Assembly: GCA_965240325.2 (NCBI GenBank)
Contig: OZ251241.1
Coordinates: 868,001 to 932,000, forward strand
DNA length: 64,000 nucleotides
Source of the DNA: Rebecca billardiae RCC1528
Taxonomy: Eukaryota > Protista > Haptophyta
Direction of reading: 5' to 3'
Shown: in pieces, positions 10,219-31,183 of the stretch
Position numbering within the stretch: the stretch's first letter is position 1
Layout: every line of letters starts with the position of its first letter
The notes under the pieces: model-generated
Seen by the model: only the letters and a program-made list of their open reading frames with translations
Databases searched by the model: none
What the model was told of the DNA's origin: nothing
Translations under genes and position numbers: made by a program

Positions 10219-10249
<31 letters not shown>

Positions 10250-10886: not shown

Positions 10887-10918
<32 letters not shown>

Positions 10919-12375: not shown

Positions 12376-12626
12376 TATGATGGTCGCCGGCGATGACGCC
12401 GCGATGAATGTAGCAGCTAGCCGGAATGAAGATGACTGCGCGTCTGCTGATGCTACTCAGACGTGGCGACTTAGTAGTACTAGCAGTGATGACGGCGACT
12501 TGACCGGCAGGGCTCATGATCAGGACTGCTGCTGTGCAAATTCGTCCGCCGCCAATAATTCCGCCATCAATTCCTGGTCGTAAATACCGGTATCGGTCGT
12601 GCAGGATCGTCCCATTCGTTTGAACG

Positions 12627-14528
12627 ATGCCGCCCGCCTGGGCGGTGCTCGTGCATCGGCACGCGTTCGCGCGCTGGCGGCGGCGCGCGGACGCGCTGCA
12701 CGCGCTCGACGCCGCGTTTCGCCGGCGCGCCGCTGCGCACTCCTTCGTGCACGCGCGCTTCGTCGTGCACACGTGGCTGCGCCAGGGCTTCGACGCGGGC
12801 AAGCTGCGCGCGCGCTCGTGGCGCGTCTGGCGCATGCTCACGTCCAAGGAGCGCGCCGAGCGCCGGGAGGCGGACATCTCGGCGGTGTCGAGGCTGCGCA
12901 TGCGACGCGCCGTCGAGCGCGCGCGCGCCCGCCGGGCCGCGCAGCGGGCCCGCGCCCTCGCGCTCGCGCGCTCCTTGCGAGAGGCCGCGCGCGCACGGCG
13001 GCAGTGCGGTCGCGCAATGCGCGCACTCTCGCTGGCTGCGGCGCACGCGCAGATGCTCGGGCTGTTCATCGTGCGTGGCCGCCGGCTCCGGCTCGTTCGG
13101 ACGCTTGGGGCGCTCGTCTGGCACTCCGCCGCCGCGCGCGCCGCCGCTGCAGCCCGCCGGCACGCGCGTCGGCTCGCCTCCGGCCGGCGGCTTCTCACCG
13201 CCATGCTGTGCTCAGTGTGGCAGGGGCGCGTGCGCGCCGCAGCCGCGGCCGTCGCCGACGCGTCGTGCGCGCGGGCGCGAGTCGCGCGAGGCCTCGCGAG
13301 CTGGCGCTCGGGGCACGCGTCTGGCGCGGCGGCGGCCCGCGCGGGGCACGCCGCGTGCGCAGCGGTGCGCGCCGTGACGCAGCTTCGGGCGCTCGGCCGG
13401 CTCAAAGCGCATGCCGGCCATCGCCGGTGTGAGCGCGCGGCACTGCGCAAGGTGCGCACGGCGCACGTGCTGCGTGGTCTCCGAGCCTGCCTCGCGCACT
13501 GTCAGCGCCGCCGGCGGCGCTCGGTGCACACCGCAGCCGTCGTGTGTGCAAGGCTCGGCCGAGCGCTGCGCGCGTGGCGGCAGCGGCGCCGCCACCAGAT
13601 CAGGCGCCGCCCTGCGCCCGGCGTCCGAACGCTCACGGCGCGTGCACGAGGGCGCGCGGGCCGGCGTGCGCTCGCCACCTGGCGCGCACTCTCCGCCGCG
13701 CCCTCCCGCGCCGGCGCGTTGCGCTCGCGCCTGCGCGCGCGCGCGCTGCTCGCGGCGACGCAGCAGTGGGCGCGCGCATACGAACGGGCGCTCATCGCGC
13801 TGGTTGGGAGGCGCGCGGCGCGCGCGGCGCGCGCGGCGCGCGCGGCGGCGCGCTTGCGCGCGTGGCACGCGCTGGCGCTGATGGAGTGGTGCGCGCGGGG
13901 TCGGGCGGCGGCGGCGCTCCGACGCGCCGCCACGGCTGCGCTGCACCACTGGAGCCGGGTGTGGGACGCGCGCCGGCGGCGGCACGTCTGCGCCGCCCTG
14001 TTCCCCGTGCTACTGAACGCGCGCGCGGGGCGCTCCGCCTCGGCAGCCAACGCACGCGGGTGCCCTTGCGACGCCGCGGTGGCCGAGGCGGAGCGGCTGG
14101 CCGCACGCGCACTCGGGATCTCGGCATCGGCGGCCGTTCGGCTCGTTCCGGCGCAGACGGCGACCGGCTCGTCCCACGACGGGCCAGCTGGCGCCGACCA
14201 GGCTGTGCGCAAGGGGCGGCAGCCAAAGCTGGCATCACCACAACAGCACGGTGACGGCGACGGCGGGCGAGTGCGCCGCGATCGCTGTGGGCTTGGCTCT
14301 GAGCGCAGTGGAGCAGGAGCATCATCCGCCACGATCGGCATCAGCCGTCGCGACGAAGCGTATCACAGGCCTTGTGGTTGCTGCCATCATCACGACGCCG
14401 ACGGTGGGCGGGCGTCATTGGTGCGCCCAGCAATCATGCCAATGATGACGACGACACTGAGCAGCAGGACGACTGCAGCAAATGATGACGTGCCGTTCTC
14501 CACGCCGCCGCTGTCGCACGCTCTCTAG
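12627..14528 (+). CDS. Sfi1-like (centrin-binding repeat) Arg/Ala/Trp-rich helical protein
   Basis: Recurring L/F-x-x-W-R/K/H motifs (AFARWRR, SWRVWR, GLASWR, ALRAWR, ALATWR, RLRAWH, ALHHWS) resemble the Sfi1 repeat consensus. The start codon is uncertain. Confidence 0.55.
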   Translation: MPPAWAVLVHRHAFARWRRRADALHALDAAFRRRAAAHSFVHARFVVHTWLRQGFDAGKLRARSWRVWRMLTSKERAERREADISAVSRLRMRRAVERARARRAAQRARALALARSLREAARARRQCGRAMRALSLAAAHAQMLGLFIVRGRRLRLVRTLGALVWHSAAARAAAAARRHARRLASGRRLLTAMLCSVWQGRVRAAAAAVADASCARARVARGLASWRSGHASGAAAARAGHAACAAVRAVTQLRALGRLKAHAGHRRCERAALRKVRTAHVLRGLRACLAHCQRRRRRSVHTAAVVCARLGRALRAWRQRRRHQIRRRPAPGVRTLTARARGRAGRRALATWRALSAAPSRAGALRSRLRARALLAATQQWARAYERALIALVGRRAARAARAARAAARLRAWHALALMEWCARGRAAAALRRAATAALHHWSRVWDARRRRHVCAALFPVLLNARAGRSASAANARGCPCDAAVAEAERLAARALGISASAAVRLVPAQTATGSSHDGPAGADQAVRKGRQPKLASPQQHGDGDGGRVRRDRCGLGSERSGAGASSATIGISRRDEAYHRPCGCCHHHDADGGRASLVRPAIMPMMTTTLSSRTTAANDDVPFSTPPLSHAL

Positions 14529-14799
14529 TCTACTCCGTAGACCGTACTCGTCGTCGTGAACCGTGTTCTCTCCGGATGGCGCAGGCGCGTCTGCCAGCGT
14601 GTCTCACTGTGGCTCCGTCGGAATGACTCTCGATGATACGCATACGGCGGTAATGGCACTTATAATATTGGCAGCATACTGACGGCGTATAGCTAGTGAT
14701 ACGGTCCGACTCCGCCGGCGTCATTACCGACGATGCCTACGGTAGTAGCCAGTAGGATAGGCGGCACTCATTGAGTCCCTGGCGCGGGGTGGGCCAGTG

Positions 14800-15700
14800 G
14801 GTGGGCAGTCGTGTCGTTTCAAGCCATCATCCAAGGGCAGGGGGCTGTCTTGCTGAGCTTGACTCGGAGCAGAAGGCCTCAGCCTGCGCCTGGGGGCTGC
14901 AATAAGGGGCCTGGTAGAGCCAGCAGGTGGCTGTGTGGCCTGTGGGCCAGTCTCCGACTGTGCAAGGCCGTTGTGAGCTCCGTTAGGCCAGTGTGACTGC
15001 CCGCAGCTGGGTCTGCCTCAGGCTCAGGGCCCCCGAATGTGTCAACACATTGTCCGACGGACGCACATCGCGGCGAGCCATTGGGGAGTGGCAGATTGGA
15101 GCGGCCATATGCCCACAAGAGGTGTGGCAGGCTGCAGAGACCACGCAATCACCATAGGGAGGGGGAGAGCACGCTGTAGACAAGGGCCTTGCTGTAGAGG
15201 CCATGCCCGCAAGAGTACGTAGCTGAGGGTGCACGTGGTGACCACCCGCCACGAGCTGCTGCAGGTTGGCCTGCCCTGCTCCCGCCTGCCAGCCCTGGGC
15301 AGGGGGTTGCTGCTGGATGACAGGTGGCCCTTGCAGCTGATTATCCATGGCAATCGCCCCTCCGGGCCCTGCCTAGTGCCTGTGCCTGTGGGGGCGGGGC
15401 TGCCCCCTGGGCCGTGCCCAGGCGGCGGCCGAAGCTCCCTGGCATGTCTGAGGAGACGCCCTGCCTCTGTGACAGCTGGGTGTCCACTTCCTTGCGGGCC
15501 TGCATGATCGATGATGCCTAGCCCTGCCTTCATTAAGGCCACGTGCATGGTCCTGCCGAGATGCACGTTGCCCCCCACAATGAGCTTCAGTGTGCTGGGC
15601 ACCCTGCCCGCCCATGAGCCATGAGGGCAGCCCCAGAACACACGTGCCGCGCCAAGTTCCATGGCCATGCATGCTGCAGCCTGTCCCTGCATGAAGGGCT
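14800..15700. mobile_element. CpG-depleted degenerate repeat/TE relic
   Basis: GC-rich but with only ~1-4 CG per 60 nt and an excess of TG/CA, unlike the CG-saturated flanking genes. Reading frames are broken, and a (TA)n tract bounds it on the right. Confidence 0.45.
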
Positions 15701-15701
15701 C

Positions 15702-15704
<3 letters not shown>

Positions 15705-15762
<58 letters not shown>

Positions 15763-15778
15763 TATATACATATATATG
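15705..15778. repeat. (TA)n microsatellite (a poly-G run follows at ~15944-15964)
   Basis: Directly visible. Confidence 0.95.
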
Positions 15779-18454
15779 CGCCCGGGGGCACGCGCACGCG
15801 GGGGCGCTGCATACGACGACTACTTCGAGACGACGGCTGACGACGCGTGGCACCGCGACCACCGCGGTGGCGCGCGCGCGTCGACGCCAGACAGACGGTG
15901 CGTCGAGCTTCCGCTCGGCGATGGAGTGATGGGCGACTACGAGGGGGGGGGGGGGGGGGGGGGGACGACGGCGAGGAGCGCTGATCCTGGTGTTTGTCTC
16001 TGCTGCTCGATCTGATGCCGCTACAGCTTGCTGACTTTGACGCCTGCCCGTTGCATACCACGTCGTTAATATATATATATATGCGATATGCATGCTTCTG
16101 GCCGCAGCCACTCGGTAGGCATCGAGCTCAGGGCACTCGGAGAAGAGGTGGTGCTCAGTACTTCAGGCGCGCTGGATGTATCAGTGTAGCATGATCACAT
16201 AGGGGGCAAGCAAGCATCGCTATAAATAAATCGTAAATATGCAGCCCCCGACTGGAATCGCACAGAGAACAACGACGTCGGGTCTCGCAGGGCAGCCGGC
16301 TGTAGGAACTCATATCCATGGTGGAGTATGTAGTACTGAGTCACTAGTAGGCAGGCACTGTGCTGGCAGCAGGTCCGTAAGACGCCTGTGGAGGCCTCTG
16401 GCCACACGCGCCAGTCCATTCACATACCAAGTCACAGCTGGACTTGGCGCCGGCGCCCGGTGACTTGCAGGTGGGCTGCCCCGTAGCTTTGTGACAGCAC
16501 ACGGTCATACAAGAGGGGGCCGGCGGACATCGCGATCTGAATTCTGATATATTCTGATGCTGCACTGCTCGGCCATCAATGAATCGTATAGTTACTAGAT
16601 GATGATGGCCCGCGGTGCAGGGCGGAGCGCGGCAGCGTGGAGCCCGCAGTACGGGCCCTAAGGCCTAACCACGTTTCAAATTTTCAAAATAAAGTTAATA
16701 AAGAGCTTTGATCAAGAAAAAAGGGACGGGGGACGAATTTCAGGGCTGGAGGAGACCGAGTTTCGAATTTTGAGATCGCATAGAGGTATCCATTACTCAT
16801 TAGCGAGAAAAGGTCGCGCCCGGCTTGTTTGTATTCAGAGGAATCAATCAACGAAACCCACGCCCAAGTGTCCGAAAGTGGCGGTATAAATAATTCGGTG
16901 GGTAGACTCTCGTTCATGTGTGACCGTAGTATATAACTGAAAGACAATGGCCTCGCCGCCGCAAGAACGACTCTCACCAACTCCAATAGTGCGTGCGACG
17001 AGACATTGAAAAATACCGCCCGCAGCTATTCGTTGCCAGCCCATTTCATATGACATATTCACTGAGCTCAAAACCTATCACCATTCTGCATTCACCGGCC
17101 GCGTCGTCGCCCGCCGCGGGTCGATCGGTAGGTTTTGAGCCCGCTGAATGAAAAGCCGGCTCAGCAAGCCGAGGGGCTGCCTCGGCGCCTAGCCTCGCGA
17201 CAGGCGCCGCTCGCCGAGCGGCGGCCGCTGCGCACGAGGCTGCGTCGGCAGTTCATTCAATCCGACGGACTCAGCGCAGGTGCGCGCGGCTGCGGCGCGG
17301 GTCCCGACGGTCATGTCGGCGTCGCTTTCGTGCCCCGCTCACCCCGCGCGCCCCGCCCTGCCGATGGCCCCTTCGGCCCAGTGCGGGTTCCTCGTCGCAG
17401 TCGTCGCGGACGGCTCGTGCAGTCCGTGCTTGACTCGTTCGTGTGTGATGATATTCTCAATTTATTCTGGGTGCGAAAGCGCGTGGCGCGTGGGAGCGAG
17501 GCGCGTTTCTAATCGCTGTGTTTCCAGCCGACCATGCGCGCGCCCGCGCGCGCCACGCCGCGCGCCACGCCGCACGCCGCGCAGCTGAACAAGTCGCGAG
17601 GACGAGTTTTTTTTCAGCTTCTTCACTCCGTGACGGACTAGTCCGTGCCGCGCCTCGGATCTGATGGTGCCTCTGGTGGAGCCCAGGGTTCGCCTGATCC
17701 AGTCGGCGTGGTGCGAGCGGGTAGTCTTGGCCGTTATTCTGTCGGGATGTGGAGCAGCCACCCCGGCCATCTCGCTTGCCCAAGCCCTCGCTCGCGCCGT
17801 CCACGGCCGAGCTGTGATGGCCGTCCGCGTGCCGGCTGTGGCTTGCACCGCGTGTGAGCCGGCCTCTAGCTGCGCTTGAATGAAGGCGCGGCAAGCAGCG
17901 CGCGCAGATCTGCGGGCGACGAGGCTGGGCGAATCCTCGCAGCACGAGCTGGACCGCGCGCACATATCTATTTTGCTCTCGTCCGCCCGTCTCGAGTCTT
18001 CACTGCTTCGGACTCGGGCGCATCGAGGGGCTCCGCGCGCTGACCGTGGGGCCGTGGGCGTGTGAGTCCCGGAGCCAGTCGGAGCGGCTCTGGCGCTCAC
18101 GATGGATGCCTGACTGCCTGACACAGAGAGCCACAGGCTGATCTGCGAGCGGCGAGTCCGCGACGATGGCGAGGTGGCATATGCTACGGGCGACGCCGTG
18201 CTCCCCTCTCGCCCTCAGTCCGACACCGCCGCGCCGGCGGCCGCGACCGGCGGGCTGCGCGCACGGCGGCCCTTGTAGTAAGTATAGATAGCTTAGTAGT
18301 TGTACTCACGCATCACTTGGCATCGACGCGGCGGCGAGGCTGCAGTGTGCCGTGACGGAGCGGGTGGCACAGCTGCACCGCGGGCCCCCAACTACGTTGG
18401 TTCTGACGGAAGAGGACCGCGGAACGCGGTCATATTATGCCTCGTCGCTCTCGG

Positions 18455-20038
18455 CTAGTACGACGTGCGCTGCCGCTTGCTCGTGCTTTCGCCACGCTGC
18501 TGCTCTGGTGGCTGCGCACCAACGACGCCCATCGCCACGGCCTGCATCAGCATGCACGCCTCGAGCGGATCCTCGCGCATGAACGCACTCCAACGCGCCT
18601 GGCTCACAATCGCCTGCAAGTTGGCCTTCACCACACCGCGCGCTGCCTCGCTGATCCGAGAGCCAGCTCCCGCCGCGCGCGTGTGCCGCAGGATGTCCAG
18701 GCAGTTGTCCGCGTCCAGCACACCCAGCACCGCCTCCTCGCACCGACCCGCCACGAGGCCCAGCAGGTCACCGCCAGCGCGCGCAGAGGCCACCTCGGCT
18801 GCGTCTGGCCCAGAAAGCAGTGCGCCTTGCGCGCTCCCAGCAGCACCCTCGCCGGGCGGCTGCAGCTTGCACGCCAGCCGAAGCAGCTCGAGCACCTCGC
18901 CCGGCTCGGTGGGCAGCTCGGCGCGACCACCCGCGTGTAGCTGGCGCAGCAGCGCCTCGAGCGCCGCCGAGCTGAAGTCCGGGTCGGCGTCCACCTCGCG
19001 CCGGCTGCCCTCGGCCAGGCCGCCGCCCAGCTGCCGCGCAAAGTAGCTCGAGCTGTGAATCAGAAGCGCGCGGCTGCCGCCCAGCTGCGTGCCGTCCGCG
19101 CAGCGGAACACGACGTCGTGCCGCGCGGCTGACGGCTCGCTCACCAACACCGACTGCGAGAGCAGCTGCTCGTGCGACGCGCGCAGCTCGTCGACCTCCT
19201 GCGCCAGCCGGGCGCACTGCGCGCCCGCCGAGCCCAGCGCGCGCTCACAGCACGCGTCGTCACGCACGAGCTTCTTCGCAGCCTGCATGCATGGGTTCCC
19301 GCTGTCTTGGTGCGCACGACGCAGCAGCGCGCCCACAGCCTGCTCGTTGCTCGCCATCGCCGCACGGCCGGCGGCCGAGCTGGTGAGGGCAATGATCGCA
19401 CGCTGTGCCCACGTTTGAGTGTTGCTGTCGGCTGAGCACACCGCTGAAGCGAGCGGAGGGATGGCGCCAGCCTCGACGATTGGCGCGCAGAGCGAGTCTG
19501 ACCTGGCGAGGTTGCGGAGAGCACCCATTGCATTGCACAGAGCCTCCGCATCGGTGCTGGACTTGAGCAGCGCGACGAGCGGTGCGATCGCACCAGCGTC
19601 GGCGATCGATGCGCGGAGCGGGGGATGGCGAGTGAGATTGGCGAGAGCGCCCGTCGCTTCCTTGTGCGACCCTTCAGCATCGGTCGTCTGCAGCATGGCC
19701 ACGAGGGGCTGCACGGCGCCAGCCTGTGACACGCAGCCAGGGAGATTGTACGCAATCATCGTAAGAGCTGCCGCCGCAGCTGCCCGAACGCTTGCTTCGC
19801 GTGATCCTCCCAGCATGCGCACGAGGGTTGCGACCGAGCCGCCTCGCTCGATTGCATCGGGCTCTTCGAGCTTGCGGCCCATCCACGGAACGCAAAACGG
19901 CGTGAGGGCGCTCACGATGGCCTCGTCATCACGTGGCGTCGCCTCGAGCGCGCGCACGAGGTCAGAGAGCGTGGTGGGGCCGATGACCGCCGAGGCGAGT
20001 GCCCCAGCGCGAGCCACGGCCTCCTGGACAAATCCCAT
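18455..20038 (-). CDS. ARM-repeat + BTB/POZ-BACK protein, copy 1 (527 aa; 1 core 42-aa repeat)
   Basis: ATG (MGFVQEAV) at 20038. ARM consensus IADAGAIAPLVALLKS...AMGALRNLA. BTB motif HDVVFRCADG...SRALLIHSSSYF...LEALLRQLH. BACK/3-box-like RCEEAV...DNCLDILRH. C-terminal basic motif SKRQRT. Confidence 0.88.
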   Translation of the reverse strand: MGFVQEAVARAGALASAVIGPTTLSDLVRALEATPRDDEAIVSALTPFCVPWMGRKLEEPDAIERGGSVATLVRMLGGSREASVRAAAAAALTMIAYNLPGCVSQAGAVQPLVAMLQTTDAEGSHKEATGALANLTRHPPLRASIADAGAIAPLVALLKSSTDAEALCNAMGALRNLARSDSLCAPIVEAGAIPPLASAVCSADSNTQTWAQRAIIALTSSAAGRAAMASNEQAVGALLRRAHQDSGNPCMQAAKKLVRDDACCERALGSAGAQCARLAQEVDELRASHEQLLSQSVLVSEPSAARHDVVFRCADGTQLGGSRALLIHSSSYFARQLGGGLAEGSRREVDADPDFSSAALEALLRQLHAGGRAELPTEPGEVLELLRLACKLQPPGEGAAGSAQGALLSGPDAAEVASARAGGDLLGLVAGRCEEAVLGVLDADNCLDILRHTRAAGAGSRISEAARGVVKANLQAIVSQARWSAFMREDPLEACMLMQAVAMGVVGAQPPEQQRGESTSKRQRTSY

Positions 20039-20815
20039 GCGGCCGTCGCTGGGCAGCCGCTCGTCGCCGCTCGATCGACAAGCGCTCGATCGACGACAAG
20101 CGTGAGCGCCGCAGCCAACCGTCGTCTTCACCGGAGCCCTCCCCGGCCCGGACTCTGGGCGAACTCGGAGAACGGTCACTCCACGGCCGGAGAAGCAGCG
20201 CGATGGCGGGTTGGAGTTCGAGGACGGCAGCCCGTCTCTCTGACCCGATGCATGGCGAAGCCTTCGCCGCCCGGCCCTTGCGCTGGCAGTAAGCCGCTAT
20301 CTAGTTAGTGAGTAGCTGATGCAGCCACCGGGACCGCGCGCAGGTGGTCAGTGCCCGTGCCGTATCAGGTCCGAACCAGCTGCAGGCCGAACGGTCGAAG
20401 CACTGGGTCAAGAACTGACGACGTTCACAGCGGGAGTGTGGCGGCAGTGAGCACCAAGCTACTACTACGTGAACAACTTTCTCCAGGATATGCCTCGTGA
20501 TGGCGGAGCACTCTCGACTCTGCGTCAGGTGTACTGTCACCACGCCCAGGGCCTGGCACCGCCCGTTCTGATCATCACCCTTCGTCCTCGATAGTCGTCG
20601 ATCTGCACTTAGTCGATCGTTCGACGTCTTCGACGACGCCTCAGTCATCGTCCTTGAAACGTGTTACGCAACAATTATTGTCGTCGCATCGAAAGCCTCA
20701 TCATGCGACGAGATGAATCCTCAAGCCAGTACGAGTGCGCACCTGTAATCGGAATCGTCGGACATCGATCTAACTGATGAGGCTCTGCGCCGCGGCCAGT
20801 GACGCTGCGCTCTGA

Positions 20816-23800
20816 TCACGACGTGCGCTGCCGCTTGCTCGTGCTTTCGCCACGCTGCTGCTCTGGCGGCTGCGCACCAACGACGTCCATCGCCACGGCC
20901 TGCATCAGCATGCACGCCCCGAGCGGATCCTCGCGCATGAACGCACTCCAACGCGCCTGGCTCACAATCGCCTGCAAGTTGGCCTTCACCACACCGCGCG
21001 CTGCCTCGCTTATCTGAGAGCCAGCTCCCGCCGCGCGCGCGTGCCGCAGGATGTCCAGGCAGTTGTCCGCGTCCAGCACGCCCAGCACCGCCTCCTCGCA
21101 CCGACCCGCCACGAGGCCCAGCAGGTCACCGCCAGCGCGCGCAGAGGCCGCCTCGGCTGCGTCTGGCCCAGAAAGCAGTGCGCCTTGCGCGCTCCCAGCA
21201 GCACCCTTGCCGGGCGGCTGCAGCTTGCACGCCAGCCGAAGCAGCTCGAGCACCTCGCCCGGCTCGGTGGGCAGCTCGGCGCGACCACCCGCGTGTAGCT
21301 GGCGCAGCAGCGCCTCGAGCGCCGCCGAGCTGAAGTCCGGGTCGGCGTCCACCTCGCGCCGGCTGCCCTCGGCCAGGCCGCCGCCCAGCTGCCGCGCAAA
21401 GTAGCTCGAGCTGTGGATCAGAAGCGCGCGGCTGCCGCCCAGCTGCGTGCCGTCCGCACAGCGGAACACGACGTCGTGCCGCGCGGCTGACGGCTCGCTC
21501 ACCAACACCGACTGCGAGAGCAGCTGCTCGTGCGACGCGCGCAGCTCGTCGACCTCCTGCGCCAGCCGGGCGCACTGCGCGCCCGCCGAGCCCAGCGCGC
21601 GCTCACAGCACGCGTCGTCACGCACGAGCTTCTTCGCAGCCTGCATGCAGGCGTCCCCGCTGTCTTGGTGCGCACGACGCAGCAGCGCGCCCACAGCCTG
21701 CTCGTTGCTCGCCATCGCCGCACGGCCGGCGGCCGAGCTGGTGAGGGCATTGATCGCACGCTGTGCCCACGTTTGAGTGTTGCTGTCGGCTGAGTACGCC
21801 GCTGACGCGAGCGGAGGGATGGCGCCAGCCTCGACGATCGATGCGCAGAGCGAGTCTGACACGGCAAGGTTGGCGAGAGCGAGCGCTGCACTGCCCAGAG
21901 CGTGCGCATCGGTGCTGGACTTGAGCAGCGCGACGAGCGGTGTGATCGCGCCAGCCTCGGCGATCGGTGTGCGGAGCGGGGGATCACAAGCAAGGCTGAA
22001 GAGAGCACCCGCTGCATTGCCCAGAGTGTTCGCATCGGTGCTGGACTTGAGCAGCGCGACGAGCGGCGAGATTGCGCCAGCCTCGGCGATCGGTGCACGA
22101 AGCGAGTGATCGCAAGCAAGGCTCCAGAGAGCACTCGCTGCATTGCCCAGAGTGTTCGCATCGGTGCTGGACTTGAGCAGCGCGACGAGCGGTGTGATCG
22201 CGCCAGCCTCGGCGATCGGTGCGCGGAGCGGGGGATCACAAGCAAGGCTGAAGAGAGCACTCGCTGCATTGCGCAGAGCCCTCGAATCGGTGCTGGACTT
22301 TAGCAGCGCGACGAGCGGTGCGATCGCGCCAGCCTCGGCGATCGGTGCGCGGAGCGGGGGATCACAAGCAAGGCTGAAGACAGCACTCGCTGCATTGCGC
22401 AGAGCCCTCGAATCGGTGCTGGACTTTAGCAGCGCGACGAGCGGTGCGATCGCACCAGCCTCGACGATTGGCGCGCGGAGCGAGTCTGACTGGGCGAGGT
22501 TGGCGAGAGCGAGCGCTGCACTGCCCAGAGCGTGCGCATCGGTGCTGGACTTGAGCAGCGCGACGAGCGGTGTGATCGCGCCAGCCTCGGCGATCGGTGT
22601 GCGGAGCGGGGGATCACAAGCAAAGCTGAAGAGAGCACCCGCTGCCTTGCCCAGAGTGTTCGCATCGGTGCTGGACTTGAGCAGCGCGACGAGCGGCGAG
22701 ATTGCGCCAGCCTCGGCGATCGGTGCACGAAGCGAGTGATCGCAAGCAAGGCTCCAGAGAGCACTCGCTGCATTGCCCAGAGTGTTCGCATCGGTGCTGG
22801 ACTTGAGCAGCGCGACGAGCGGTGTGATCGCGCCAGCCTCGGCGATCGGTGCGCGGAGCGGGGGATCACAAGCAAGGCTGAAGAGAGCACTCGCTGCATT
22901 GCGCAGAGCCCTCGAATCGGTGCTGGACTTTAGCAGCGCGACGAGCGGTGCGATCGCGCCAGCCTCGGCGATCGGTGCGCGGAGCGGGGGATCACAAGCA
23001 AGGCTGAAGAGAGCACTCGCTGCATTGCGCAGAGCCCTCGAATCGGTGCTGGACTTTAGCAGCGCGACGAGCGGTGCGATCGCACCAGCCTCGACGATTG
23101 GCGCGCGGAGCGAGTCTGACTGGGCGAGGTTGGCGAGAGCGAGCGCTGCACTGCCCAGAGCGTGCGCATCGGTGCTGGACTTGAGCAGCGCGACGAGCGG
23201 TGTGATCGCGCCAGCCTCGGCGATCGGTGTGCGGAGCGGGGGATCACAAGCAAAGCTGAAGAGAGCACCCGCTGCCTTGCCCAGAGTGTTCGCATCGGTG
23301 CTGGACTTGAGCAGCGCGACGAGCGGCGAGATTGCGCCAGCCTCGGCGATCGGTGCACGAAGCGAGTGATCGCAAGCAAGGCTCCAGAGAGCACTCGCTG
23401 CATTGCCCAGAGTGTTCGCATCGGTGCTGGACTTGAGCAGCGCGACGAGCGGTGCGATCGCACCAGCCTCGGCGATCGGTGCGCGGAGTGAGTCTGACCT
23501 GGCGAGGTTGCAGAGAGCACCCATTGCATTGCACAGAGCCTCCGCATCGGTGCTGGACTTGAGCAGCGCGACGAGTGGAGGGATGGCGCCCGCCTCGACG
23601 ATTGGCGCGCAGAGCGAGTCTGACCTGGCGAGGTTGCCGAGAGCACCCGCTGCATTGCCCAGAGTGTTCGCATCGGTGCTGGACGTCAGCAGCGCGACGA
23701 GTGGAGGGATGGCGCCAGCTTCGACGATCGGTGCGCAGAGCGAGTCTGACACGGCAAGGTTGGCGAGAGCGAGCGCTGCACTGCCCAGAGCGTGCGCATC

Positions 23801-24412
23801 GGTGCTGGACTTGAGCAGCGCGACGAGCGGTGCGATCGCACCAGCCTCGGCGATCGGTGCGCGGAGTGAGTCTGACCTGGCGAGGTTGCAGAGAGCACCC
23901 ATTGCATTGCACAGAGCCTCCGCATCGGTGCTGGACTTGAGCAGCGCGACGAGCGGTGCGATCGCACCAGCGTCGGCGATCGATGCGCGGAGCGAGTCAA
24001 ACGTGGCAAGGTTGCAGAGAGCAAGAGCTGCCGCCTTGTACAGCCCTTCAGTATCGGTTGTCTGCAGCATGGCCACGAGGGGCTGCACCGCGCCAGCCAG
24101 TGACACGCAGCCAGGTACATGGGCCGCGATCCTCGCAAGAGCTGCCGCCGCAGCTGCCCGAACGCTTGCTTCGCGTGATGCTCCCAGCATGCGCACGAGG
24201 GTTGCGACCGAGCCGCCTCGCTCGATTGCATCGGGCTCTTCGAGCTTGCGGCCCATCCACGGAACGCAAAACGGCGTGAGGGCGCTCACGATGGCCTCGT
24301 CATCACGTGGCGTCGCCTCGAGCGCGCGCACGAGGTCAGAGAGCGTGGCGGGGCCGATGACCGCCGAGGCGAGTGCCCCAGCGCGAGCCACGGCCTCCTG
24401 GACAAATCCCAT
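20816..24412 (-). CDS. ARM-repeat + BTB/POZ-BACK protein, copy 2 (1198 aa; 17 core 42-aa repeats)
   Basis: Same N- and C-terminal parts as copy 1, with 16 additional in-frame 126-bp modules. Uninterrupted ORF. Confidence 0.9.
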   Translation of the reverse strand: MGFVQEAVARAGALASAVIGPATLSDLVRALEATPRDDEAIVSALTPFCVPWMGRKLEEPDAIERGGSVATLVRMLGASREASVRAAAAAALARIAAHVPGCVSLAGAVQPLVAMLQTTDTEGLYKAAALALCNLATFDSLRASIADAGAIAPLVALLKSSTDAEALCNAMGALCNLARSDSLRAPIAEAGAIAPLVALLKSSTDAHALGSAALALANLAVSDSLCAPIVEAGAIPPLVALLTSSTDANTLGNAAGALGNLARSDSLCAPIVEAGAIPPLVALLKSSTDAEALCNAMGALCNLARSDSLRAPIAEAGAIAPLVALLKSSTDANTLGNAASALWSLACDHSLRAPIAEAGAISPLVALLKSSTDANTLGKAAGALFSFACDPPLRTPIAEAGAITPLVALLKSSTDAHALGSAALALANLAQSDSLRAPIVEAGAIAPLVALLKSSTDSRALRNAASALFSLACDPPLRAPIAEAGAIAPLVALLKSSTDSRALRNAASALFSLACDPPLRAPIAEAGAITPLVALLKSSTDANTLGNAASALWSLACDHSLRAPIAEAGAISPLVALLKSSTDANTLGKAAGALFSFACDPPLRTPIAEAGAITPLVALLKSSTDAHALGSAALALANLAQSDSLRAPIVEAGAIAPLVALLKSSTDSRALRNAASAVFSLACDPPLRAPIAEAGAIAPLVALLKSSTDSRALRNAASALFSLACDPPLRAPIAEAGAITPLVALLKSSTDANTLGNAASALWSLACDHSLRAPIAEAGAISPLVALLKSSTDANTLGNAAGALFSLACDPPLRTPIAEAGAITPLVALLKSSTDAHALGSAALALANLAVSDSLCASIVEAGAIPPLASAAYSADSNTQTWAQRAINALTSSAAGRAAMASNEQAVGALLRRAHQDSGDACMQAAKKLVRDDACCERALGSAGAQCARLAQEVDELRASHEQLLSQSVLVSEPSAARHDVVFRCADGTQLGGSRALLIHSSSYFARQLGGGLAEGSRREVDADPDFSSAALEALLRQLHAGGRAELPTEPGEVLELLRLACKLQPPGKGAAGSAQGALLSGPDAAEAASARAGGDLLGLVAGRCEEAVLGVLDADNCLDILRHARAAGAGSQISEAARGVVKANLQAIVSQARWSAFMREDPLGACMLMQAVAMDVVGAQPPEQQRGESTSKRQRTS
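21848..23989 (-). repeat. Coding tandem array of 17 x 126-bp ARM modules, with 630-bp (5-module) higher-order repeat over 21848-23485
   Basis: The near-invariant anchor ATCGGTGCTGGACTT(G/T)AGCAGCGCGACGAG recurs every 126 nt. Modules 5-9, 10-14 and 15-17 repeat in the same order. Confidence 0.95.
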
Positions 24413-25197
24413 GCGGCCGTCGCTGGGCAGCCGCTCGTCGCCGCTCGATCGACAAGCGCTCGATCGACGACAAGCGTGAGCGCCGCAGCCAACCGTCGTC
24501 TTCACCGGAGCCCTCCCCGGCCCGGACTCTGGGCGAACTCGGAGAACGGTCACTCCACGGGCGACCGGAGAAGCAGCGCGATGGCGGGTTGGAGTTCGAG
24601 GACGGCAGCCCGTCTCTCTGACCCGATGCATGGCGAAGCCTTCGCCGCCCGGCCCTTGCGCTGGCAGTAAGCCGCTATCCAGCTAGTGAGTAGCTGATGC
24701 AGCCACCGGGACCGCGCGCAGGTGGTCAGTGCCCGTGCCGTATCAGGTCCGAACCAGCTGCAGGCCGAACGGTCGAAGCACTGGGTCAAGAACTGACGAC
24801 GTTCACAGCGGGAGTGTGGCGGCAGTGGGCACCAAGCTACTACTACGTGAACAACTTTCTCCAGGATATGCCTCGTGATGGCGGAGCACTCTCGACTCTG
24901 CGTCAGGTGTACTGTCACCACGCCCAGGGCCTGGCACCGCCCGTTCTGATCATCACCCTTCGTCCTCGATGTCTCGATAGTCGTCTGCACTTAGTCGATC
25001 GTTCGACGTCTTCGACGACGCCTCAGTCATCGTCCTTGAAACGTGTTACGCAACAATTATTGTCGTCGCATCGAAAGCCTCGTCATGCGACGAGATGAAT
25101 CCTCAAGCCAGTACGAGTGCGCACCTGTAATCGGAATCGTCGGACATCGATCTGACTGATGAGGCTCTGCGCCGCGGCCAGTGACGCTGCGCTCTGA

Positions 25198-27030
25198 TCA
25201 CGACGTGCGCTGCCGCTTGCTCGTGCTTTCGCCACGCTGCTGCTCTGGCGGCTGCGCACCAACGACGTCCATCGCCACGGCCTGCATCAGCATGCACGCC
25301 TCGAGCGGATCCTCGCGCATGAACGCACTCCAACGCGCCTGGCTCACAATCGCCTGCAAGTTGGCCTTCACCACACCGCGCGCTGCCTCGCTGATCCGAG
25401 AGCCAGCTCCCGCCGCGCGCGCGTGCCGCAGGATGTCCAGGCAGTTGTCCGCGTCCAGCACGCCCAGCACCGCCTCCTCGCACCGACCCCCCACGAGGCC
25501 CAGCAGGTCACCGCCAGCGCGCGCAGAGGCCACCTCGGCTGCGTCTGGCCCAGAAAGCAGTGCGCCTTGCGCGCTCCCAGCAGCACCCTCGCCGGGCGGC
25601 TGCAGCTTGCACGCCAGCCGAAGCAGCTCGAGCACCTCGCCCGGCTCGGTGGGCAGCTCGGCGCGACCACCCGCGTGCAGCTGGCGCAGCAGCGCCTCGA
25701 GCGCCGCCGAGCTGAAGTCCGGGTCGGCGTCCACCTCGCGCCGGCTGCCCTCGGCCAGGCCGCCGCCCAGCTGCCGCGCAAAGTAGCTCGAGCCGTGGAT
25801 CAGGAGCGCGCGGCTGCCGCCCAGCTGCGTGCCGTCCGCGCAGCGGAACACGACGTCGTGCCGCGCGGCTGACGGCTCGCTCACCAACACCGACTGCGAG
25901 AGCAGCTGCTCGTGCGACGCGCGCAGCTCGTCGACCTCCTGCGCCAGCCGGGCGCACTGCGCGCCCGCCGAGCCCAGCGCGCGCTCACAGCACGCGTCGT
26001 CACGCACGAGCTTCTTCGCAGCCTTCATGCAGGCGTCCCCGCTGTCGTGGTGGGCACGACGCAGCAGCGCGCCCACAGCCTGCTCGTTGCTCGCCATCGC
26101 CGCACGGCCGGCGGCCGAGCTGGTGAGGGCATTGATCGCACTCTGTGCCCACGTTTGAGTGTTGCTGTCGGCTGAGTACGCCGCTGACGCGAGCGGAGGG
26201 ATGGCGCCAGCCTCGACGATCGATGCGCAGAGCGAGTCTGACACGGCAAGGCGGGCGAGAGCGAGCGCTGCACTGCCCAGAGCATGCGCATCGGTGCTGG
26301 ACTTGAGCAGCGCGACGAGTGGAGGGATGGCGCCAGCTTCGACGATCGGTGCGCAGAGCGAGTCTGACACGGCAAGGTTGGCGAGAGCGAGCGCTGCACT
26401 GCCCAGAGCGTGCGCATCGGTGCTGGACTTGAGCAGCGCGACGAGCGGCGAGATCGCGCCAGCCTCGGCGATCGGTGCACGGAGCAAGCGATCAAAAGTA
26501 AGGTCGCAGAGAGCACCCGCTGCATCGCACAGAGCCTCCGCATCGGTGCTGGACTTGAGCAGCGCGACGAGCGGTGAGATCGCACCAGCGTCGGCGATCG
26601 ATGCGCGGAGCGAGGGATGGCGAGTGAGATTGGCGAGAGCGCCCGTCGCTTCCTTGTGCGACCCTTCAGCATCGGTCGTCTGCAGCATGGCCACGAGGGG
26701 CTGCACGGCGTCAGCCTGTGACACGCAGCCAGGGATATGGGACGCAATCATCGTAAGAGCTGCTGCCGCAGCTGCCCGAACGCTTGCTTCGTGTGATGCT
26801 CCCAGCATGCGCACGAGGGTTGCGACCGAGCCGCCTCGCTCGATTGCATCGGGCCCTTCGATTGTGCTGCCCGGCATAACCCAGAACGGGGTGAGGGCGC
26901 TCACGACGGCCTCGTCATCACGTGGCGTCGTCTCGAGCGCGCGCACGAGGTCAGAGAGCGTGGCGGGGCCGATGACCGCCGAGGCGAGTGACCCAGCGCG
27001 AACCACGGCCTTCTGGACACACGTCATCAT
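25198..27030 (-). CDS. ARM-repeat + BTB/POZ-BACK protein, copy 3 (~610 aa; 3 core repeats at 26230-26607)
   Basis: ATG ATG (MMTCVQKAV) at 27030 aligns with the starts of copies 1 and 2. Same BTB/BACK C-terminus. Confidence 0.88.
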   Translation of the reverse strand: MMTCVQKAVVRAGSLASAVIGPATLSDLVRALETTPRDDEAVVSALTPFWVMPGSTIEGPDAIERGGSVATLVRMLGASHEASVRAAAAAALTMIASHIPGCVSQADAVQPLVAMLQTTDAEGSHKEATGALANLTRHPSLRASIADAGAISPLVALLKSSTDAEALCDAAGALCDLTFDRLLRAPIAEAGAISPLVALLKSSTDAHALGSAALALANLAVSDSLCAPIVEAGAIPPLVALLKSSTDAHALGSAALALARLAVSDSLCASIVEAGAIPPLASAAYSADSNTQTWAQSAINALTSSAAGRAAMASNEQAVGALLRRAHHDSGDACMKAAKKLVRDDACCERALGSAGAQCARLAQEVDELRASHEQLLSQSVLVSEPSAARHDVVFRCADGTQLGGSRALLIHGSSYFARQLGGGLAEGSRREVDADPDFSSAALEALLRQLHAGGRAELPTEPGEVLELLRLACKLQPPGEGAAGSAQGALLSGPDAAEVASARAGGDLLGLVGGRCEEAVLGVLDADNCLDILRHARAAGAGSRISEAARGVVKANLQAIVSQARWSAFMREDPLEACMLMQAVAMDVVGAQPPEQQRGESTSKRQRTS

Positions 27031-27084
27031 GTGGCCGCCGCAGTGATCAGCCCTCGTCGCCGCTCGAACGCTGCAAGCGCTCGA

Positions 27085-28683
27085 CCCGGAACGCCGCAGA
27101 AAAGGGCGGGAACCGGACATGTCGTTGGTCGGCCGGCCGGCGATGGCGGTACGCGCTGCCCCGCGTGTTCGATCGGCTTCTTCAACATCCGCGGCGCACG
27201 TCTGCGCCGATGGGCCCGGCGCTCACGCGCGAGCGCGAGGCACCGAGTGCATCGACGCTTGCCGGGAACTCTGGCAAGAGCCCGAGCAGTGGCCACGCGA
27301 TCCCTCACGACGACGGCTCGCATGATGGCTCAGAGGAGGAGCCGAACCTCGGCTACCAGCCATATCCGCTGCAGGTCGAGGTCGGGGTCGGAGGGCGTGG
27401 ACGGCGAGAACGGCGCCTCGCAGGACGTCATCGCCCGCCAGGTATGGCAGTGTGGGGAATGCGACGACAGGCAGGGCCCTGGCGTGGGCATGTACGCGCA
27501 GCTGGTGCAACGCGGAGCGCAACCAGGGCGGCAGAGGCCTTGGGCTGCACAGCTGCCCCCAGCTGTCGTTCGGCTTCGAGCTGCGCAACCGCGGGCTTAA
27601 TGCGGCAGCAGGGGCGCTGCCGCTGTAGCGGCGACTCGAGGGCGCGGTGCCCGGGTTCGTGCCGAAGAAGGGCGGACGCAAGCGGTCACAGATCAGCGTG
27701 CAGCCCTTCCGGCACGCGGTGGAGACAGTACGCGCACCTGCTGCGCGGGTGGCCGCACGAGGTTGACGCGGCACCGGCCGCGCGGGTCTCCGGGTACAAG
27801 GGGCTGCACACACGAGCGGCCGCGGCCCGGGCAACACGAGGCGCGGGTGCGTCGGATGCGGCGCGCGCGTCTGCAAGCGCTTCGAGCCATTCTGGTCACA
27901 CGCGCGGCAGCACCGCATGCCCCAGCCGCAGCTGCCGCCGCCGTCGGAGGAGCCTATCGTGACTTGTGGAGTTTAGTCATTCCCGCCAAATCCCGAGCTT
28001 GCACCTGCGAGCGCGCCTGCTGGCCTCGGCGCACGCGCCGAGGGACAGGGCGGCCCGGCCGCGAGCGCGGCAGTAGGCAGCCCACCGCGGGGGGCGAAGC
28101 GCACGCGCCACGCGGAGAGCAACTCGCCACTGCGGCAGCTGTCACTATCGAGCCCGGAGCACCGGCGTAAGCGCCGCCAATCAGAGCCGCCGCTCGTGCT
28201 CAATCGCTTATTGGCAGAGGCGTCAGACGCGTCACCGAGCAAGCGGGCACGACCCGCGCGCCGTCGTGCGTCGCTGCCTGCCGCCTAGCCTCAGAGGCGG
28301 TCAGTATCGGCCGCGCGCGTGGCAAGCGTGGCCAGCGGGGCGTTAGACGCGCGCATAGCCTTCGTCCCGCGTGATGCGGCCTTTGGCTAGCTTTCAGATG
28401 CCCGCCGCCCTGGCAGACGAGCCTCTTCTGCCCACACGGCCAGCTGCTCGCGAGTGGCGCCGCTCGTGCGACGTCGAGCCCGCGGGCTCCTCAGAGGGTA
28501 GCTCGACGGCGAGCCTCGCGCTCGCTCGGCATCGCCATCCTTAGCATGCCCGCCGGTTGGGCCGCCCAGAGCACTCACGTGGCCCGACGGCACGCGCCGT
28601 GTACACCTTAAGAACGCCCATATCTGGCCGTAACCGTCATGTGACGAAACTGCAACTACCATGTAACTCCGCGGCGTTCCGGG
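27085..28683. mobile_element. Putative non-autonomous DNA transposon with CCC...GGG termini
   Basis: CCCGGAACGCCGC (27085-27097) is the reverse complement of GCGGCGTTCCGGG (28671-28683). It starts exactly where homology to the other copies' upstream region breaks. Degenerate Cys-containing coding fragments lie inside. Confidence 0.65.
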
Positions 28684-28790
28684 CTAAATCACGCCTTAAC
28701 CAAGTGTGCACGTTAAATCATAGTAAACTGTAAGCTCGATCGACGACAAGCGTGGGAGCCGCAGCCAACCGTCGTTGTCGTTGCCCGGAG

Positions 28791-30085
28791 CTTGTCAGAC
28801 AAACCCACAGGATGGCCAATTGTCCGGGAGGCGCAGATCAGCATCCGGACGACACACCTGCCCAGTGGAAGGTGTGTCGTCCGGTGCGCAGCGAATAGGC
28901 GTCGCGCGTGCGCGGACGCCGGTCTACGGCGGGATGGCGCTCACCAGGCGACGCGAGGGCCCGCCTTGCGCCACGCGCCCAAGGCGGCACACGAGCTTGA
29001 CGGCCGTGCGCGGGCGCCTCTTGGTGGCGAGAAGACCCGGTGGCAGCATTCCCGCCGCCTTGTCGACGCCCTCGCCACCTTTTCTGCGCGCAGAGACTGC
29101 TGACTGGCACGAGCGGCCTTGAGAGAAGGGACTTGAAGGCCTGCCCGATGAGCACGAAGGGCACGCGTGCGCCCCTGAGGTATTCAACGGTCGGGGTTTT
29201 CGCTTCTGTGCGAGGGGCCTGAGAGTGCTGAACAGCGCGAGGGGCCTGAGAGTGCTGAACATCACCGCTGCGTCTTGAGCCATGCTGGCATCGGTCAGAC
29301 CGCACGCATGTGCTAGTGACAGCCCGGACAGGCCAGTGTCACTTGGCATTCGCGCCGCCGTTGGCACGCGTCGCACAGTTCAGTAAGTGTTGCGTCGACT
29401 CCCGATACCTTGCGGTCTGCTTCGTCGCGCATGCCTCGACCTCCCTACGAATGGCTGCATGGGCACCCGGCTCGCGCTTGGCGGCCGGGAGCACGGTGAT
29501 GGCAGTGTTACGACCGGCCTTCTTCGTGCAGCAGTCCGGACACCTTCCTGCTCCAGATCAGACCACACCATGCTACCAGCGTAGGTACACACGAGCCTGC
29601 AGACGATCGCTCACAGGTCGAGCGCGCTGTCTACGGCCAGCAGGTGCCCGAGAACGCACCATGCGGCAACATGAGCATTTGAGGTGTTTGAACAATATAC
29701 TCACCAAGCAACAAAACCGCTCAACTCCGCTGAGTATGCACGGGGATCGTCGTGCGCGGGGGCTCGCCGACGCGCCAACACCTAGGCCCATCAGGCGGAC
29801 GCTGTAACTCGTCCTTAGGAGGCCTCTGGCACTTGCGTGCGCGCGTTCTCGCGCGGCGGGCGCGCATCGTGTACATGTCGCGTCGAAAATAACAGGGCCC
29901 TGCGCACGGCGAGAGCGGCGAGGGCGGGCAGGAGCGCGCGGGCGTGAGGCCCATAGGTGTCCTCGGCCGCGCCGACCTCGCGCGCGCACCCGCAGCGGCC
30001 GTGGGTGCGCGTTCGAGCGCGCCGCGTGAGGCCGCCATCGTGCCGTGCGCGCGCCGAGCCCCATCCTGTGGGTTTGTCTGACAAG
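28791..30085. mobile_element. Non-autonomous TIR DNA transposon (1295 bp) with perfect 25-bp TIRs and TSD
   Basis: TIRs are CTTGTCAGACAAACCCACAGGATGG (28791-28815) and CCATCCTGTGGGTTTGTCTGACAAG (30061-30085). Direct repeat CCCGGAG flanks it at 28784-28790 and 30086-30092. The empty site is seen in the paralogous spacers. Confidence 0.9.
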
Positions 30086-31183
30086 CCCGGAGCCCTCCAC
30101 CCGGACTCTGGGTGAACGGTCGCTCCACCACGGCCGGGGAAGCAGCGCGATGGCGGACTTGAGTTCTAGGACGACCGCCTGTCTCTCTGACCCGATGCAT
30201 GGCGAAGCCTTCCGCCCGGCCCTTCCGCTGGCAGTATGGCACTATCTCGTTAATGAGTAGCTGAGGCAGTCGCCGGGACCGCGCGCAGGTGGTGTTCGCA
30301 CCGCGCTGACAGTGGTCAGTGCACTCCGTGCCCATGCCGAATCAGGTCCAAACCGGCGGCCCGAACTGCCGAAGCACTGGTCGATGGCCAGGACTGACGA
30401 CGTTCACGGCGGGAGTGTGGCGGCAGTGGACACCAAGCTACGTGTACAACTTTCTCCGGGCTGTCTCGTGATGATGGCGGAGCACTCTCGACTCCGCGTC
30501 AGTGTGATACACTGATACACAGACTACCGATCGACCAAGGCCGTCGGACTGAGTCCAGTGACGCGGCTGACGCCGTCACGCCTCACGGGCGTCAGGTCAC
30601 CGGGCCCCGCCCAGGCCCAGGGGCGGGCCAGGGCCAGATGAGAGGCTGGCACAGTGGCAGTGACTCTGACGCGGTCACTGACGATCGCCGCCCGGATCGC
30701 GGATCAGCGCCGACTGGTGGTGGTCCGAACGCGGCGGACTCACGGTCACGGCCTAGGGCACATGTGATCATCGTCTGACGTCTCGTCACGCACGTCTGAC
30801 GACGGCGCGGACGCCCATTAACAGATTACATATCGTATCGTCATCATCATCAGCGCAGTAGCAGTATTAGACCGCCCTTGACGACAGCCGAGTCATTAGC
30901 CATCGTCGTCTAATCTTGACAGCGTATTCTGTAAGACTGTATTTAGTATCGTCCCGCGCTATTATTATTGACTACACTGCTGCTATATCTACATAGTATA
31001 CTCAGTTTTTTTTTTTAAATTCCCCTTTATAACGGGCTCCGGGTGATCAGACTGGCGGCCGAAGCCTCCAGCCCTACCCTGGCCAGCCCCCAACCAACCA
31101 CCACCCTCACCCAACCTCAAACCACTGACCGATAGAGTAGTCGACCAGACTTTCGCCGGCAGTCAAATAGCATGGGCGCCGCG

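Follow-up and report, generated by a model that had tools for sequence, protein, structure and literature searches.

Tandem ARM-BTB genes with variable armadillo arrays in the haptophyte Rebecca billardiae, candidate CUL3-type adaptors

The joining of armadillo (ARM) repeats to a BTB domain is already a known protein architecture, represented by ARMC5 in animals and by ABAP1 and ARIA in plants. Three genes of this architecture, here called A, B, and C, lie side by side on the minus strand of a 64,000-nucleotide stretch of DNA from the haptophyte Rebecca billardiae RCC1528 (contig OZ251241.1, positions 868,001 to 932,000; hereafter the window), and they differ in the number of variable ARM modules that each carries. 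Judging from the sequences and from structural models, it is rather probable that they encode three nuclear adaptors of the CUL3 type and that recombination remodels the ARM recognition arrays of these tandem genes, which would change both the length and the specificity of the substrate surface.

ARMC5 is the animal ARM-BTB adaptor. Together with CUL3 and RBX1 it forms an active E3 ligase that targets the RNA polymerase II subunit RPB1 and SREBF (PMC9226510). The plant proteins ABAP1 and ARIA, which also combine ARM and BTB, are reported nuclear regulators in replication, transcription, and abscisic acid (ABA) signalling (PMC8121025, PMC7903899). Genes A, B, and C share with ARMC5 the order of ARM repeats followed by BTB, and with the plant proteins the ARM-BTB architecture; furthermore, B and C, but not A, exceed the cutoff of the Pfam model ARM_ARMC5. 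However, the score of this model in B and C is the sum of many repeats, and the C-terminal domain, used as the query of a search described below, retrieved 32 proteins, the named ones all from Pavlovales and neither ABAP1 nor ARIA among them. The roles of the plant proteins in replication, transcription, and ABA signalling set them further apart. On these sequence comparisons, orthology of A, B, and C to ARMC5 or to ARIA/ABAP1 is not established. To our knowledge, ARMC5 has no array of near-identical modules, and ABAP1 and ARIA have no variable arrays.

At the C-terminal end of the proteins, the closest described systems are the CUL3 adaptors SPOP and plant BPM. SPOP gives the best match, by both profile and fold, over the BTB domain and the short helical BACK domain, the phi-x-E position is occupied, and a basic tail stands at the C terminus. 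A C-terminal nuclear localization signal (NLS) is also present in SPOP. In contrast, the substrate domain of SPOP and BPM is a MATH domain whereas an ARM solenoid takes that place here, a helix of ~36 residues precedes the BTB domain here, and the sequence identity between SPOP and the C-terminal unit of A is ~14 to 15% in Foldseek alignments.

For the arrays themselves, two other systems are informative. The repeats of the fungal NLR proteins HET-E/D and NWD are at least 85% identical over at least 100 aa, vary in number, are exchanged within and between family members, and carry hypervariable positions on the binding surface (PMC4986451). The arrays described here resemble them in identity (0.91 over 100 aa in B), in number (1, 17, and 3), in exchange between paralogues, and in having a hypervariable binding face, and this high internal conservation bears out the analogy drawn in an earlier reading of the sequence (hereafter the original prediction). 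However, the fungal repeats are of the WD40, ANK, TPR, or HEAT type and those found here are ARM; the fungal proteins have a NOD and a death or effector domain where a BTB ligase adaptor is found here (no NACHT or NB-ARC domain was reported by Pfam in A, B, or C); and the variation described here is that among paralogues of one genome. The three proteins are not NLRs, and the likeness is one of mechanism, not of family membership. In the literature searched, no earlier description was found of array shuffling of the fungal NLR kind combined with an ARM-BTB architecture.

The second system is man-made. In designed armadillo proteins (dArmRP), helix 3 makes the peptide contacts, one dipeptide is bound per internal module, affinity grows with module number, and the caps are usually uninvolved (PMC10684580). 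As here, their 42-aa internal modules, which are identical in the designed proteins, are framed by an N and a C cap, and they are the best matches of the array in the Protein Data Bank (PDB). Unlike the modules of A, B, and C, however, they follow a designed consensus, and the Trp and Asn positions that bind Lys-Arg peptides in dArmRP hold other, varied residues here. This means that the ligands of the natural modules must differ.

Gene models and divergence of the three paralogues

The three genes, with likely starts as explained below, are as follows.

18455..20038, minus strand: gene A, an ARM-BTB paralogue of 527 aa, counted from M48, that has 1 variable module (open reading frame [ORF], translation, Pfam Arm and BTB).
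20816..24412, minus strand: gene B, an ARM-BTB paralogue of 1198 aa, counted from M74, that has 17 variable modules (ORF, Pfam Arm in 17 stretches).
25198..27030, minus strand: gene C, an ARM-BTB paralogue of 610 aa, counted from MM, that has 3 variable modules.

The full ORFs extend over 18455-20179 (A), 20816-24631 (B), and 25198-27120 (C), all on the minus strand, and their translations are collinear. The coding starts of A and B were set at the Met of 'MGFVQEA' (M48 at position 20038 and M74 at position 24412, respectively), because the upstream sequence common to A and B has no ATG in A. Gene C likely starts at MM (27030), and a further in-frame ATG lies upstream, at 27120. The stop codon is TGA in B and C but TAG (18455-18457) in A, which has one additional codon before it. 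Each ORF is intact, with no internal stop or frameshift, and an intron is not required in any of them. The common layout consists of N-cap ARM repeats, variable ARM modules of 42 aa (126 bp), a C-cap, a long helix, a BTB domain, a 3-box or short BACK, and a C-terminal KRQR motif. A Pfam scan of the three proteins reported only ARM/HEAT-type and BTB families, with Arm E-values of 1.5e-22, 8e-126, and 3.6e-30 for A, B, and C, respectively, and BTB scores of 22 to 24 bits in all three, which are weak yet above the cutoff of 20.5. No BACK family was reported by Pfam in any of them.

By sequence comparison, a single gene has been triplicated in tandem at this locus. The duplicated unit takes in intergenic DNA, as seen from the alignment of 19450-22236 with 23824-26618, which are 95.5% identical over 2.8 kb. 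The description of the paralogues as near-identical holds for the C-terminal half, where DNA identity is 96 to 97%, but not for the N-terminal cap region, which is the most diverged part (~88 to 90% for A-C and B-C). The same split was apparent when nonsynonymous (pN) and synonymous (pS) differences were separated. In the helix-BTB-BACK part, pS is 0.02 to 0.03 and pN/pS is 0.3 to 0.55; in the N-terminal cap region, pS is 0.04 to 0.14 and pN/pS is 0.8 to 1.9, from small counts. Small as these counts are, the low divergence of one half and the high divergence of the other indicate that the ligase-side half is conserved or homogenized and the recognition half is changing. With intact ORFs and a BTB-BACK pN/pS of 0.3 to 0.55, all three copies appear to be maintained.

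Variable modules and the history of the arrays

Modules were delimited by cutting the proteins at 'PLVALL...', which gives two N-cap modules, then the variable 42-aa modules, and then a C-cap that starts with 'PLASA'. The resulting features, and the higher-order repeat found by comparing the modules, are listed here.

19457..19582, minus strand: variable ARM module of A (A2), a single module and a mosaic.
21815..23956, minus strand: variable ARM array of B, modules B2 to B18, 17 x 126 bp.
26197..26574, minus strand: variable ARM array of C, modules C2 to C4, with C3 identical to B3 in DNA.
23957..24208 (B), 19583-19834 (A), and 26575-26826 (C), minus strand: N-cap ARM modules, from module cutting.
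21689..21814 (B), 19331-19456 (A), and 26071-26196 (C), minus strand: C-cap module 'PLASA...', from module cutting.
22193..23452, minus strand: 630-bp five-module higher-order repeat in two full copies (B6 to B10 at 22823-23452 and B11 to B15 at 22193-22822), which differ at 1 nt in 630.
21815-22192, minus strand: partial third copy of the 630-bp higher-order repeat in B, from module comparison.

Between the fixed caps there are 1, 17, and 3 variable modules in A, B, and C, respectively, as had been predicted, and the reading frame is kept across all 21. Tandem Repeats Finder detected a 126-bp period in B (17.4 copies, 21808-23994, score 2799) and in C (3.4 copies, 26190-26614). The accompanying prediction that the modules are exact 126-bp copies applies to part of them only. 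Exact DNA identity is confined to five groups (B3=C3, B6=B11=B16, B7=B12, B8=B13, and B10=B15), whereas the remaining modules differ at 1 to 31 of 126 nt. At the protein level, the internal identity at a lag of 42 over 100 aa peaks at 0.91 in B and at 0.80 in C, and the mean pairwise identity of the 17 modules of B is 0.77. When classified by helix-3 sequence, the modules fall into six types, which are ordered in B as E H N E / W F H S S / W F H S S / W F H. Among the proteins in the PDB, the array is closest in sequence to designed consensus ARM proteins (E 3e-38 and 1e-40); Vac8, importin-alpha, and beta-catenin rank below these. Single-sequence AlphaFold2 prediction of full-length A gave a predicted local distance difference test score (pLDDT) of 53 overall, with a poor C-terminal half; the ARM part alone was confident.

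Several traces of recombination are still readable in the arrays. For instance, the self-identity of B is raised at an offset of 630 nt, to 96% over 300 nt and 92.7% over 1590 nt. Mosaic modules are found in all three genes: the front of A2 is like B2 (1 difference, nt 1-75) and its rear is like B4 (1 difference in 51 nt, nt 76-126), B18 combines a front part equal to B3/C3 with a rear part equal to C4, and C2 has a B2-like front and a B6-like rear. Another example is the pair B3 and C3, which are identical in DNA even though the genes around them differ by 2 to 4% or more. At the level of sequence, the mosaics, the higher-order repeat, and the identity of B3 with C3 support the 'accordion' history of module gain, loss, and shuffling that had been proposed, and remodelling by in-register unequal crossing-over and gene conversion, within and between paralogues, is well supported by these comparisons.

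The differences between modules are not spread evenly along the module. Among the 21 variable modules, amino-acid variety concentrates at module positions 12 to 30, and variability peaks at positions 13, 16, 17, 20, 23, 24, and 27, an i, i+3, i+4, i+7 spacing that corresponds to one face of a helix. These seven positions align with helix-3 positions 26, 29, 30, 33 (W), 36, 37 (N), and 40 of the designed protein YIIIM6AII. Pooled over the 15 unique modules, pN/pS is 1.81 at positions 10 to 30 compared to 0.27 elsewhere, although the module pairs are not independent and the counts are small. The minimal amino-acid changes and the synonymous variants were in a ratio of 34:5 inside positions 12 to 30 compared to 8:12 outside (Fisher p = 0.0005), and the 100-degree helical moment of variability over positions 11 to 28 had a permutation p of 0.0004. 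That the variation lies on helix 3 is borne out by pN/pS, by the Fisher comparison, by the helical moment, and by the alignment with dArmRP. The module variation falls on the predicted peptide-binding face while the scaffold residues stay constant, and this is a real pattern.

The C-terminal unit and its family

The features of the C-terminal unit are the following.

18458..19279 (A), 20819-21637 (B), and 25201-26019 (C), minus strand: C-terminal unit of long helix, BTB, 3-box or short BACK, and basic tail, from AlphaFold2, Foldseek, and profile comparison.
19010..19018 (A), 21368-21376 (B), and 25750-25758 (C), minus strand: phi-x-E motif L-A-E, aligned with KLHL22 and SPOP.
18467..18478 (A), 20825-20836 (B), and 25207-25218 (C), minus strand: basic motif KRQR, NLS-like, in all three genes.

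An alignment of 24 homologues of the C-terminal domain (alignment A1) was the basis of a family profile and of an AlphaFold2 model. It has three conserved parts, namely, a BTB core, a helical block, and a basic KRxR-like motif near the C terminus of many members. When the profile was compared with the PDB, the BTB-BACK part of SPOP was the best match (E 1.4e-13), covering both subdomains, followed by KBTBD2, KLHL3, KLHL11, and KLHL22. The model of the C-terminal half of A, computed with alignment A1, had a pLDDT of 84.6 and a predicted TM score (pTM) of 0.76, and consists of a helix of ~36 residues, then the BTB strands and helices, and then six more helices, with the post-BTB helices at residues 172 to 255. 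A Foldseek search of the PDB with this model was led by full-length SPOP and SPOP BTB-BACK (target-normalized TM ~0.7), and the next matches were the KBTBD2-CUL3, KLHL11-Cul3, and KLHL22-CUL3 complexes and vaccinia A55 BTB-BACK with Cullin-3. Since the profile and the fold match BACK where Pfam does not, the BACK is of the short SPOP type, not of the long KLHL type. Thus, of the domains that had been predicted, ARM and BTB were recovered by Pfam hidden Markov models, and BACK was not but is backed instead by the SPOP profile match and the fold.

In CUL3 adaptors, the phi-x-E motif is the main Cul3 contact (M83-S84-E85 in KLHL3), and the 3-box raises Cul3 affinity (PMC3616122). In A, B, and C, the L-A-E residues align with L-K-E of KLHL22 and with M-E-E of SPOP, and the Glu is invariant among the closest relatives (alignment A2). 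With both the phi-x-E motif and the 3-box present, the proteins carry features typical of a CUL3 adaptor (PMC3616122), as had been proposed, and on the sequence and model evidence a CUL3-adaptor function of A, B, and C is likely. The predicted basic C-terminal motif is likewise there, as KRQR in the three genes and as KRxR-like tails that recur across the family.

The family is narrow in range. An exhaustive phmmer search with the last 333 aa of A against 1.84 billion representative proteins (E <= 0.001) gave 32 proteins, the best of them 41 to 47% identical. Every match with an organism name is from the Pavlovales, that is, KAG8461085 and KAG8462735 of Diacronema lutheri and KAJ1624498 and KAJ1624663 of Pavlovales sp. 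CCMP2436, in line with the microalgal setting first suggested for the locus, and this distribution by itself makes a GC-rich pavlovophyte or a relative the most likely source. The other matches come from environmental assemblies, and several of them are MMETSP transcripts, which means that the family is transcribed elsewhere. ARM repeats precede the C-terminal domain in most of the 32. In the two related genomes that were examined, two to three family members each were seen. The closest Diacronema relative (P0152) is BTB-only and is a single gene amid housekeeping genes, and P0166 is also a single gene in such surroundings. In CCMP2436 (MU631621.1), a second, unannotated ARM-BTB copy was found at L004 4826-5685, ~4.5 kb upstream of the annotated member (7274-10387), so that the family occurs as a tandem pair in another pavlovophyte too. 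Moreover, whereas other family members have ordinary diverged repeats, with internal identities of 0.2 to 0.5, one environmental member (P0139; L010 878-1408, on a JGI 3300038657 contig) has a 123-bp ARM array of its own, with 4.3 copies and 86% matches. Two modules of that array are nearly identical in protein, and the C-terminal BTB part of P0139 appears truncated or frameshifted. This independent array means that recent array growth recurs in the family.

Other searches returned little. The environmental ARM-BTB protein P0006 was aligned with the family BTB by hhalign at a probability of 80%, and the alignment was weak. An exact look-up of proteins B and C in a public gene collection gave no match, a search of metagenome contigs with a single window protein gave no relative, and a scan of viral contigs gave no relative of the ARM-BTB genes; none of the window's own proteins turned up in the public collections. 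A word-indexed protein search with full-length C recovered only generic ARM proteins at ~33% identity, and no match was obtained when this search was restricted to the C-terminal region.

Competing explanations and the surrounding sequence

If the three genes do encode nuclear CUL3-type adaptors, their parts would work together as follows. The BTB/3-box unit would dimerize and dock on Cullin-3, as the families involved suggest, the ARM groove would bind an extended substrate peptide at about two residues per module along helix 3, and the KRQR tail would carry the adaptor into the nucleus. In-register unequal recombination together with gene conversion would have given rise to the arrays of 1, 17, and 3 modules, the 630-bp duplication, the mosaics, and the identity of B3 and C3, and such remodelling may alter both how long the substrate-binding surface is and what it binds.

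A number of points weigh against this explanation. The phi position is Leu in all three but Thr or Ser in several relatives, which means that Cul3 docking is not assured across the whole family. The helix-3 statistics, being pooled over non-independent pairs with small counts, fall short of a formal test of positive selection, and repeats in any ARM protein diverge most on the helix-3 face. For an array that contains a near-perfect higher-order repeat, the length obtained is only as reliable as the assembly. In addition, A with its single variable module and B with 17 are not necessarily both functional, and the GC content at third codon positions (GC3) of the three genes, 0.74 to 0.80 compared to 0.94 in the adjoining giant gene, may signal low expression or a different history.

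The variation could also have a neutral origin, in which a recent duplication was followed by slippage or unequal crossing-over that inflated B and collapsed A, while one copy, perhaps C, does a conserved job. The single difference per 630 nt between the higher-order copies indicates a very recent expansion, silent sites of the paralogues have diverged by just 2 to 3% in the BTB half, and the related genomes, with two to three members each, and the single-copy members amid housekeeping genes, with their ordinary diverged repeats, speak for such instability as well. However, pure slippage does not predict amino-acid changes on one helix face with synonymous variants elsewhere, and neither the three intact ORFs, nor the register held over 21 modules, nor the six distinct helix-3 types retained in the arrays sit easily with it, which makes neutral instability an unlikely account of the whole. 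The number of genes or modules could also have been misassembled from repeats. Near-perfect 630-bp repeats and genes that are 96 to 98% identical are indeed hard to assemble, and no second genome of the organism was found, but the copies carry many private substitutions and differ in their N-terminal regions, their stops (TAG versus TGA), and their upstream contexts, the modules are in frame throughout, and the usual error is collapse, not expansion. An assembly artefact is therefore very improbable.

The remaining alternatives concern function. The proteins might be nuclear scaffolds or regulators like plant ABAP1, with the BTB domain serving oligomerization only and no role as ligase adaptors, given that ARM-BTB proteins with nondegradative functions are reported (ABAP1; PMC8121025, PMC7903899), that the NLS-like tail is conserved, and that phi is polar in several relatives. 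The closest matches in sequence and fold are, however, the CUL3 adaptors SPOP, KBTBD2, and the KLHL proteins, with the 3-box included, and A, B, and C keep both a hydrophobic phi and the conserved Glu, so that a pure scaffold role seems rather improbable. The adaptors could also act like immune receptors, as a set by which a CUL3 ligase is redirected to foreign proteins that evolve fast, for example viral ones, as the original prediction went on to propose. The arrays have hallmarks of fungal NLR repeats, namely, identity up to 0.91 over 100 aa, varied counts, exchange, and a hypervariable binding face (PMC4986451). Against such a set stand the absence from the Pfam results of a NOD or any other immune signalling domain, the failure of the viral contig scan to reveal a link to viruses, and the small size of the family in related genomes (two to three members in each, not a large repertoire), and we consider it quite improbable. 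The claim of foreign targets in particular was not upheld, as no viral homologue was found and the NLS-like tail points instead to nuclear substrates. A related reading, improbable as well, would be immune-like recognition by an ARM array with high internal conservation joined to a CUL3 adaptor instead of a NOD. Recombination that shuffles the helix-3 types might then direct ubiquitylation to new targets among the fast-evolving nuclear proteins that viruses or selfish elements encode. No description of such a recognition system, either for ARM repeats or for haptophytes, was found in the literature searched.

What the locus means depends on whether the arrays set the choice of substrate. If they do, as the CUL3-adaptor explanation has it, they would offer a natural route to reprogram a Cullin-3 ligase module by module, on the same cap-module-cap plan that engineers chose for designed armadillo proteins, and haptophytes, about whose defence biology little is known, would gain a first candidate for recognition proteins that evolve rapidly. 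Should the variation be neutral instead, the locus still offers a clean and recent case of solenoid arrays that grow and collapse through unequal recombination, with the mosaic junctions and the higher-order repeat still readable.

Upstream of the genes, two further features were noted.

20039..20534, minus strand: upstream segment of A (5' untranslated region or promoter), with a near-identical counterpart upstream of B (24413-24912) and a 77% match at 30087-30510.
27085..30086, no strand assigned: stretch of ~3 kb between gene C and the remainder of the shared upstream segment, a probable insertion, with inverted repeats abutting both junctions.

Gene C shares with the upstream segment of A and B only the last ~65 nt before its start, and the remainder is found farther away, at 30087-30510, where it is 77% identical. 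The upstream segment of C is thus split by ~3 kb, which points to an insertion upstream of C. Inverted repeats lie at or near its junctions (27085-27100 with 28668-28683, and 28783-28815 with 30061-30093), and this suggests that the insertion consists of one or two elements with terminal inverted repeats. Within the putative insertion, there is also a perfect 27-bp tandem duplication of 1.9 copies (29210-29261).

The ARM-BTB cluster lies in an island of lower GC content (window positions 14000 to 32000, GC 0.59 to 0.69), and the flanks at 8000 to 14000 and 32000 to 64000 have a GC content of 0.72 to 0.83. The island may owe its composition to low expression, to gene conversion that is less biased, or to a different origin. 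Next to the cluster, an ORF of 6,831 codons (31921-52416, minus strand) has ~79% GC, a GC3 of 0.94, 23% Ala, a signal-peptide-like N terminus, and a C-terminal region rich in E, R, and A, and a cohesin domain is the sole Pfam family reported in it (E 2.4e-7). This ORF is too long to have arisen by chance and is presumably the gene of a giant secreted or membrane protein. Further along, a gene for the splicing factor Prp19/Pso4 (53483-55138, minus strand) has a strong match to the Prp19 domain and a partial WD40 match; because the latter is partial, the ORF probably crosses introns or is cut by them. Its best public relatives are ~44% identical, and one of them is from the haptophyte Pleurochrysis carterae; identities this low suggest that the protein collection searched contains no close relative of the source organism. 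A bacterial origin of the locus was ruled out by the presence of this spliceosome gene in the window together with the eukaryotic nature of all relatives, and a giant-virus origin was ruled out by the GC content and the lack of viral homologues. On the other side of the cluster, two long ORFs on the plus strand, at 7557-12134 (1,525 aa) and 12627-14528 (633 aa), lie in DNA of 77 to 83% GC and matched no Pfam family; these may be genuine genes particular to the lineage, or the extreme GC content may have produced them.

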